DNA from: Adineta vaga
Lineage: Eukaryota; Animalia; Rotifera
Length of the DNA: 64,000 nucleotides
Assembly (NCBI GenBank): GCA_021613535.1
Contig: CP075497.1
Span: 2,976,001 to 3,040,000 of the forward strand
Direction of reading: 5' to 3'
Made by a program: the position numbers and the translations under genes. This document shows, one piece after another, positions 13,377-15,583 of the stretch (the stretch's first letter is position 1; each line of letters starts with the position of its first letter). The notes below the pieces were generated by a model. That model saw only the letters and a list, made by a program, of their open reading frames with translations. It was not told the origin of the DNA and searched no databases.

Positions 13377-13940
13377 TAACCACGACTTTTGAATCTTTCA
13401 CAACATATGAATCTATTTGATGACATAGTACAACGCAAAGTATGAAGAGTACGAGATATCTATAGAAAATATGATGTAGAATTTTGTTTTGCTTGCTAAA
13501 TTGTGTACGTACCTAAAGGCCATTTTAGATCGAAGATGGATGTAAATAGAAAAATGACCCTTGAACTACTGTTTTTATATAGCAACTGATAAGATTATTC
13601 TGTTCATTCATATTTTTGACCAACTGTTGTCTAGATACTTTTATTGATAGTCATATCAAACAGTTTGTATTGATAAGAGACTTAACTAAAGATATTGTGT
13701 ATATTATTTATCTATCAAGTGATGTTCATAAAGTTCATTCTGTTTCTATGTGTTGTCATAAGATATATAAGGATTAATAAACGTTGTTATCGATCTTGCT
13801 ATCTAGTCTATTCGATTATAAAAATGACAAATAGGATGATCACAAAAAAAAGTTTCAATAAATCAAAAATAGAGTAAGAGCGAGAGTAAAACTGATATAT
13901 AAAAAGAGAAGAGTTTTTTGCTGTTGATTATTTTCAGTTT

Positions 13941-14969
13941 TTAACGAGATTCAACATGTGCTGATGATGAACTGCTTGATGTTTTTGATGATTCAGCATG
14001 TGTTGTTGTTTTTCCAACTGTGACTGCAGCACCTTGAACATGAGTTTCACCTGTAGCAGCAGCTTTTGTGGTGATGACCTAAACACAAATATATGAACTT
14101 ATTCCTAAATATTCAAATCAAATCTTCATACTGTTGTGGTGGTTGATTGAAGACGACGTGAAGCATCTTCGTGACCAAGAGCAGTAACTTGTTCAGTAAT
14201 TTTTGCTACGATAGAGCAAATAAATATAAATCAACAAATGGAGAATTACAGATACTTACTGACTTGAGCGTTGCTTTGAGCTTGAGCTTCTTTAAGAACA
14301 CCCTGAAAACAAAAAAAATGATGAGAAATATTCGCGATAATGATTAAAATTATAATAATCAACTGACCATTTTCAATCGGTTAGCTTCTTCGTTAAGATC
14401 ATCGATACGTTGACGAGCTGAGATAAGAATTTGTTCTTGACGAACATTAAGTTCTTTTTCAAGTTGAGCAAGTAAAGAAGCTTTTTCAGCATCGAGTTTT
14501 GCAACATGTTCTTGTAATTTACGTTTGAAGTCATTTTCGATATCTAATTAAAATAAACATATTTTATTTCAAAACAATAAACATTTAGAAATTCAAATAA
14601 TTTACCAGATGTACGTAAATTAGCGTCAGCGAGGAGTTGTTGTTGTTGTAATTGTGTTTCAGCAACAACTTTTTTGATGGATTCAGCAACAGCTTCACTG
14701 ATTTCTTCAGTACGTTTGCGTGAATATTCATCAACTTGGAGATGTGTTGATCCTAAATAACATTATGTCCAATATATCTTCCGTCTTGCGATATATCATG
14801 TGAAAAACTTACCAAGACGAGCCATAAGATCATTTATTTTTTTGGTATTTTCCATGCTAACCTTCGATTGAGTTTCAGTTTGAACAACCGATTGTACATG
14901 AACATTTTCAGCTTGAGCTGAATGTACTTTGGCTGAGCCTGATGATGATGTAGCAGTCATGTGAGACAT
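13941..14969 (-). CDS. 244-aa hydrophilic coiled-coil protein (CAHS/LEA-like architecture), 6 exons: 14969-14813, 14752-14606, 14543-14368, 14302-14260, 14205-14132, 14078-13941
   Basis: Five canonical GT-AG introns. Exons sum to 735 nt in one open frame from ATG to TAA. Biased codon use (GCT, GTT, CGT, GAA). Absent from the ORF track because the exons are short. Confidence refers to the gene model, not the function. Confidence 0.9.
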
Positions 14970-15583
14970 ATTTTAAATAATTTGAATAGATCGATATACG
15001 AATAGAACGTTTGTGAAGAAATGTAACACGAGCAAGTAGAAATCATCCGTATATATACACTTAACGAACTGTTGATATCTTAAGACCTCGATTTAACTCT
15101 TTCGCTCTCTCTCTTTGTTACACATACGCATAGTCCATCGTTCATGTTTCTAGTCGCGAAAAACAAAGTATTCCTTTTACTATCCGTCCGTGTAAACACA
15201 CAAATAAAATAAAGTTTCGTCGATATAATAGAATTACAATGAACGCATGCACATGCGTTAACTTTATGACCGACGAAAGAAAAACCAGACGATCACCCAA
15301 AAGAATTCGATTATTCAAAGATAAACAAATGAATGTACTTGTACTTTGTGAATCTATTGCGTCATCTCATCCCTTTCAGACAAATGTTTTTCGGAAAAAA
15401 AACCGACTAATTTGATCTGCTTATTTGAATTTTATTAATCTGTTATATTCAACGTTTACCTGGGTGATTTGATAATAAATATAACTGTACATGTCAAGGG
15501 AAAAAAGAGAATAGATATCATCATTACAAAAAAAATTGCATTAAGTTCAATGTACAATAGAAAAATAGATCATGTGTGAAAAA

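Follow-up and report, generated by a model that had tools for sequence, protein, structure and literature searches.

A spliced gene of Adineta vaga belongs to an undescribed bdelloid protein family with a predicted CAHS-like design

Introduction

Bdelloid rotifers tolerate drying although they do not accumulate trehalose, and the means by which they do so have long been in question. To our knowledge, only LEA proteins, which bdelloids are known to use, and chaperones have so far been proposed to account for this tolerance.

Two described systems lie closest to the protein considered here. Gelation of the tardigrade protein CAHS D proceeds from an antiparallel dimer of its linker, through heterotypic beta contacts of the N and C termini, to fibres and gels (PMC10949331). 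A coiled coil with beta-containing flanks has been proposed as the general requirement for such behavior (PMC10949331). In group 3 LEA proteins, the 11-mer carries apolar residues at places 1, 2, 5, and 9, a pattern that is also the core pattern of hendecads (PMC6975979).

The gene described here lies in a window of 64,000 nucleotides (the whole stretch of DNA that was analyzed; C6:2976001-3040000) of the bdelloid Adineta vaga, taken from a 100.8-Mb assembly of six contigs. It is a real, spliced, and transcribed member of an undescribed bdelloid-wide family. We regard this as a family that is new but of a functional kind already known, with a well-supported structure and a function that we infer.

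Gene structure and transcription

The gene occupies positions 14969..13941 of the minus strand (window coordinates are used throughout this section), where six exons join into a 735-nt frame encoding a protein of 244 aa. Its five introns measure 60, 62, 65, 54, and 53 nt; every one is of the GT..AG type, and their GC content is 13-30%, versus 38.6% in the coding sequence. The features of the locus, in the direction of transcription, are the following.

15050..15057, minus strand: possible TATA box TATATATA, 81-88 nt 5ʹ of the ATG, proposed from its letters
14813..14969, minus strand: exon 1; ATG at 14969; S/T-rich N tail, beta-prone N motif, and start of the helix; joint 14752/14813 present in RNA
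14871-14906, minus strand: N motif (residues 22-33), conserved and beta-prone, inside exon 1
14606..14752, minus strand: exon 2, phase 1; helix with the conserved G-S/T-T-H..Q.D.Y block
14368..14543, minus strand: exon 3, phase 1; most conserved portion of the helix
14260..14302, minus strand: exon 4, phase 0, 43 nt; helix
14132..14205, minus strand: exon 5, phase 1; last stretch of the helix, then the opening half of the C motif (S-T-T-T-T, 14132-14146)
13941..14078, minus strand: exon 6; rest of the C motif (V-I-T-T-K, 14064-14078) and S/T/V/H-rich C tail; TAA stop at 13941-13943
13794..13940, minus strand: 3ʹ UTR, about 140-147 nt long; RNA contigs stop at 13802 in X1 and at 13794 in X8

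Evidence from RNA comes from Logan contigs of four runs, placed on window positions 13700-15200. All six exons are spanned, with at most one mismatch, by a 908-nt contig (X1) and by a 753-nt contig (X6). The splice joints appear at their exact positions, as CT..AC on the plus strand, and all five are present in X1, X5, and X6 and four of the five in X8. In addition, the independently annotated orthologue P0076 of A. steineri is identical to the window product at 215 of 240 aligned residues, and the alignment has no gap at the splice junctions. With five joints in RNA contigs, orthologues that align over their full length, and a product that agrees by eye with the one first proposed, the six-exon gene put forward in the earlier note is real. 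That note had also called the gene hidden; the spliced structure stands, but orthologues in other bdelloids are already annotated, as unnamed products.

At the 5ʹ end, the two contigs that span the whole gene start at 14973, four bases ahead of the ATG, and positions 14974-15025 are uncovered; the AG acceptor that would be a sign of trans-splicing is absent at 14974-14975. At the 3ʹ end, the unmatched letters of the X8 contig that stops at 13794 include a plus-strand run of T, consistent with a poly(A) tail. Two further joints, at 14200-14367 and 14749-14836, occur in X8 only, each from single contigs, and neither is of the GT..AG type. One omits exon 4, and the other has 26 foreign letters between its two sides. 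The probable cause of both is chimeric assembly with transcripts of paralogues and not alternative splicing. Among the neighboring open frames of the window, a Pfam search returned no informative match.

Codon use sets the gene apart from its surroundings. On a score that compares actin and RPLP0 exons with other open frames, the gene reaches +0.134 per codon, and the 31 other open frames of at least 150 aa in the window all fall below zero (-0.07 to -0.41), which bears out the earlier suggestion of codon use like that of highly expressed genes. Arginine is encoded by CGT in 10 of 12 cases and alanine by GCT in 24 of 28, and CTA, AGA, ACG, and GCG do not occur at all. Taken together, this codon use and the many environmental transcript contigs described below indicate high expression; the depths of the RNA contigs cannot themselves rank genes by expression.

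An unbroken helix with an 11/3 period

The 244-aa product contains no cysteine, tryptophan, or proline and only a single phenylalanine and a single tyrosine, as had been counted before, and is rich in serine, alanine, threonine, glutamate, and glutamine. Charged residues make up a fraction of 0.33, the net charge is about 0, and no hydrophobic stretch is found at the N terminus of the window protein.

The structure was predicted by AlphaFold2 from a 32-sequence alignment headed by the orthologue P0076, which is 90% identical to the window protein. In this prediction a single unbroken helix extends over residues 33-191 (about 159 residues), 143 of them with a pLDDT of at least 90, and both tails are unstructured (pLDDT below 50). 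The amphipathic helix of about 150 aa with flanking tails that was first read from the window is thus reproduced in the model of P0076.

The helix has a pronounced hydrophobic period. In the window protein, hydropathy peaks at 3.68 residues with a power of 108.7, and the best of 500 shuffles reaches 95.6. The family profile has a power of 102 at 3.69 and 87 at 3.667, above every shuffle, compared with 10 at 3.5 and 3.5 at 3.6. The peak falls at 3.67-3.70 in 31 of the 32 members, including those of the GC-rich clade discussed below; the remaining member, P0070, peaks at 3.75, and its gene model appears faulty. When the helix is written eleven residues to a row, the apolar ones fall at places 2, 3, 6, and 10, which are adjacent on an 11/3 wheel, and charged places stand beside them. 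A period close to 11/3 with this set of apolar places makes the helix a series of about 14 hendecads. The classical heptad type of coiled coil was also considered, and the power of 10 at 3.5 versus 87 at 3.667 rejects it. The coiled-coil helix of the earlier note therefore survives as a long helix, but of a hendecad-based type and not of the classical heptad type.

The sequence itself is not a tandem repeat. Self-similarity recurs weakly at lags of 22, 33, and 66 (z 2.7-4.6), and the two halves of the helix align no better than shuffles (44 vs 32.5 +/- 6.5). The earlier statement that no LEA 11-mer is present is accordingly correct for an 11-mer sequence repeat, but it overlooked the strong 11/3 hydrophobic periodicity. 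If the models hold, about 14 unbroken hendecads would form an unusually clean natural example of an antiparallel 11/3 coiled coil.

Predicted self-pairing and the end motifs

Two copies of the orthologue P0076 were modeled together, and ipSAE reached 0.52 in three of three runs, versus 0.00 for the best of three controls; in a calibration that is weak for eukaryotic proteins with no solved relative, the ipSAE mark was reached by 21 of 30 solved one-chain pairs and 0 of 23 solved single chains overall, and by 17 of 29 eukaryotic proteins but 1 of the 7 among them without an older solved relative. At least 42% of contacts agree between runs, and the pLDDT of the partner is at least 67. The confident contacts in the model (82-141, 67-156, and 104-119) are antiparallel, with a register centered at about residue 111, and the modeled interface runs from residue 37 to 185 with the 4-4-3 spacing of the hendecad stripe. 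This model covers the orthologue and informs the helix only, the tails being disordered in AlphaFold2; it supports the view that the chains may form an antiparallel dimer.

Outside the helix, strongly beta-prone hexamers are limited to three places: the N motif (residues 23-33), the C motif (residues 195-205), and a stretch of the C tail (residues 218-223). The N motif stands directly before the helix and the C motif directly after it, and these are the best conserved segments outside the helix; in the C motif the commonest residue is found in 0.86 of sequences on average. With antiparallel pairing, each end of the rod would bring together an N motif and a C motif from different chains.

The "dumbbell" arrangement described for CAHS (PMC10949331) is thus present, as an amphipathic helix (33-191) between beta-prone termini. 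The earlier note had drawn an analogy with CAHS from layout; with a long amphipathic helix, beta-prone motifs on both sides, and an antiparallel two-copy model, the predicted likeness appears stronger than was claimed then.

The family across bdelloids

Exon 3 alone matches 13 places in the genome, and the family profile finds 13 loci and one fragment of the N motif. That fragment (C6:8318491-8318604) is an isolated 37-aa match to the N-motif region (E 4.4e-5) with no adjoining helix-coding part. Two origins would fit it, a gene fragment and an exon belonging to an unrelated gene. In an exhaustive phmmer search against 1.84 billion representatives, exon 3 gave just 63 matches. Searches with the gene itself used its single exons, and full-length searches used the relatives P0076 and P0014 or the alignment A1 in place of the joined product of the window. 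All named relatives in the full-length searches with P0014 and A1 come from Adineta, Rotaria, or Didymodactylos; they are labeled unnamed or hypothetical, and none carries a Pfam domain. A single complete hit list contains no named monogonont (Brachionus) homologue, and literature searches found no paper describing the family. Environmental contigs from JGI add about 100 distinct full-length clusters; these contigs measure about 0.9-1.1 kb and hold complete frames of about 245 aa, for which reason they are taken for spliced environmental transcripts.

In a maximum-likelihood tree, the gene falls within a supported subfamily (SH-aLRT 99) that also includes its C3 ohnologue P0118 and members from A. 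steineri, A. ricciae, and five Rotaria species. Several subfamilies each contain both Adineta and Rotaria, which makes the expansion older than the split between the genera. Values of dN/dS between paralogue pairs are 0.21-0.25, and the family is under purifying selection.

The paralogues differ strongly in intron number. Five introns interrupt the gene described here, and several paralogues (L003-L006, L011, L012, and G000:C5:15364881-15365615) encode the entire helical core, or almost the complete protein, in a single open frame (131-262 aa). The subfamily of the gene has therefore acquired introns, or the other subfamilies have lost them. Two paralogues 52 kb apart on opposite strands, C1:10652285-10652677 (plus) and C1:10704466-10704858 (minus), are nearly identical (dN 0.033, dS 0.073), the result of either a recent inverted duplication or gene conversion. 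In the predicted proteins P0028 and P0031, a B-box or coiled-coil N-terminal part is fused to the helical domain of the family; P0028 corresponds to the paralogue L005 (G000:C1:10704466-10704858). These putative fusions may be either real transcripts or artefacts of the gene models.

A divergent clade in a GC-rich eukaryote

P0055, P0057, and about 14 relatives form one long-branched clade (SH-aLRT 100) that is 33-36% identical to P0076. The N motif, the helix, the C motif, and the period of 3.69 are all present in it. The contigs that carry these genes are 60-65% GC, and loci of this clade include the following.

L013:5001-5939: divergent-clade gene
L014:177-1079: divergent-clade gene
L015:10001-10555: divergent-clade gene

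A gene for eIF3c adjoins the family gene on two of the GC-rich contigs, and a threonine synthase fusion is also found on one GC-rich contig of 27 kb. One source run of these contigs is a spruce-bark metagenome in which 3% of reads are eukaryotic. The host of the contigs is a eukaryote and not a bdelloid, and it is probably not an animal. Matched against PDB chains of ribosomal P0, its own P0 favors those of animals over those of plants and fungi by only a small margin. Neither its proteins nor their neighbors have a named member in their clusters. Since the divergent clade sits on non-bdelloid contigs, the family extends beyond rotifers, which amends the description of a convergent rotifer counterpart in the earlier note. 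This raises the question of whether horizontal transfer took place or the family is wider and older, and of how bdelloids acquired it.

In the ESM Atlas, a comparison of language-model features places second, and nearest outside the rotifer clusters, a 224-aa cluster that is commonest in Tardigrada. P0076 scores 0.89 against this cluster (191 shared features) and the divergent P0055 scores 0.82 (169); the tool itself grades such values as leads. A search of the same resource by shape returned, besides the family's own cluster, generic long helices only. An evolutionary link between the family and tardigrade CAHS, through a very distant common ancestor or through gene transfer between small eukaryotes of soil and moss (bdelloids, tardigrades, and the GC-rich eukaryote), is a reading that we consider quite improbable. 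Were such a link true, hendecad-helix protectants would make up a wider family spanning unrelated organisms from places that dry out, and the "tardigrade-unique" CAHS-type gel formers would be a single branch within it.

Possible functions of the protein

CAHS-like self-assembly is the best-fitting reading of these data, at a probability of roughly 0.45. The gene would encode an abundant cytosolic protein that assembles with itself. Two chains would pair antiparallel over their full length into a rod of about 24 nm, each end of which would carry the beta-prone N motif of one chain and the C motif (S-T-T-T-T-V-I-T-T) of its partner. Through these heterotypic ends, rods could then associate lengthwise or laterally. 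Water loss or osmotic stress would concentrate the protein, which might then form reversible filaments or a gel, as reported for CAHS D. Higher-order assembly, gelation, and any protection on drying are steps that we infer by analogy.

Rotaria socialis and R. magnacalcarata are obligately aquatic and do not survive desiccation (PMC7943196). Both keep intact members of the gene's subfamily (P0068 and P0070), which speaks against a dedicated role in drying. Many highly expressed "unknown" genes that are induced on rehydration appear in the tables of Moris et al. (2024), entered there under identifiers without coordinates or sequences.

The protein could instead be a surface-binding 11/3 helix of the kind found in group 3 LEA proteins, apolipoproteins, perilipins, and synucleins, which lies flat on membranes or lipid droplets and stabilizes them, either during drying or constitutively, and builds no protein network. 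The apolar places of the family coincide with the 1, 2, 5, 9 pattern of group 3 LEA proteins after a shift of one place, which favors this possibility, as does the recurrence of similarity at lags of 22, 33, and 66. The names that recur below threshold in Pfam searches, V-ATPase G, Apolipoprotein A1/A4/E, and phage gp3, are those of long-helix families. Apolipoprotein A1/A4/E (PF01442) is listed for 4 of 32 members, all of them weaker than E 0.001 (best E 0.067), and when the family profile is compared with all PDB sequences, the best E is 0.31 and ApoA-I appears at E 3.7. However, LEA_4, Apolipoprotein, and Perilipin are found at threshold in 0 of 32 members, and LEA_4 (PF02987) gives no match at E up to 10 in seven members or at E up to 1 in all 32. 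The helix also lacks tandem repeats, prolines, and proline-punctuated 22-mers, and its stripe consists of leucine, isoleucine, and valine rather than the alanine and threonine of LEA proteins. Moreover, the predicted self-pairing passes its controls, and binding to surfaces would give the conserved beta-prone end motifs no role. On balance we consider a surface binder unlikely.

The protein could also be a filament of constitutive structural or cytoskeletal type, located in the syncytial integument, cilia, or muscle, for instance, and without any particular part in desiccation; this is likewise doubtful. Conservation is high all along the helix, far above what is usual for protectants that are disordered when hydrated, and would suit a constitutive structural protein too. 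Purifying selection on the paralogues and the retention of the gene in obligately aquatic Rotaria point the same way, codon use and the transcripts assembled from RNA suggest that expression is steadily high, and the old paralogue subfamilies could be tissue isoforms. Against this, no known rod family is recognizable: Pfam searches with the four larger exons gave no match, none of the 32 full-length members has a match at threshold, and neither intermediate filament (PF00038) nor tropomyosin (PF00261) is matched, nor is a heptad period present. The earlier note had named intermediate filament, tropomyosin, and apolipophorin as families of which a confident match would speak against its reading, and Pfam and PDB profile searches gave no such match. 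In addition, a named Brachionus homologue is absent from the one complete hit list despite the rotifer body plan that the two groups share, and known cytoskeletal rods do not resemble a protein of this length (244 aa) that bears S/T/V/H tails. Should the protein nevertheless prove to be an ordinary structural one, it would still represent a new rod family, of modest interest.

That the reading frame is a chance one stitched together over false introns, with no real gene behind it, is virtually impossible given the presence of all five joints in RNA contigs, orthologues that align end to end from at least nine bdelloid species, and purifying selection among paralogues.

Under the preferred reading of CAHS-like self-assembly, the family is a concrete candidate for a desiccation protectant: it is nameless, present in many copies, conserved across bdelloids, and has the codon use of highly expressed genes. 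By analogy, the candidate may share the three-part design shown by experiment to be required for gelation of CAHS D. The mutational predictions that follow center on the two end motifs and on the apolar stripe.

Comparison with known systems

Like intermediate filament proteins and tropomyosin, the family has a long alpha-helical rod, non-helical ends, and a probable capacity for self-association. Unlike them, it shows no stutter or linker pattern, and the protein is much shorter.

ApoA-I, ApoA-IV, ApoE, and apolipophorin-III share with the family long amphipathic helices with an 11-mer periodicity, and there are weak profile matches below threshold. However, the family has no signal peptide, no prolines or proline-punctuated 22-mers, and none of the breaks of a helix bundle; it is modeled as one straight helix.

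Group 3 LEA proteins resemble it in the eleven-residue apolar period and in a hydrophilic, charge-balanced helix. In place of a LEA_4 match and a tandem 11-mer motif, the family has conserved beta-prone motifs at its ends. Furthermore, the apolar stripe is built of alanine and threonine in group 3 LEA proteins and of leucine, isoleucine, and valine in the family, and for this reason the hydrated protein probably has its helix already folded and paired.

The layout also resembles that of CAHS. In size (244 aa vs 224 aa for the Atlas neighbor), in the lack of a signal peptide, and in belonging to a multigene family, the protein is like CAHS proteins, and it likewise has a central amphipathic helix between beta-prone, S/T/V-rich termini. 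As in CAHS D, an antiparallel helical dimer that would yield heterotypic ends is predicted. Unlike in CAHS, the helix of the family is longer (about 155 residues), unbroken, and strictly hendecad; the rotifer family is much more conserved; and it occurs in bdelloids and in a non-bdelloid, GC-rich eukaryote. The comparison supports reading the likeness to CAHS as a shared design.
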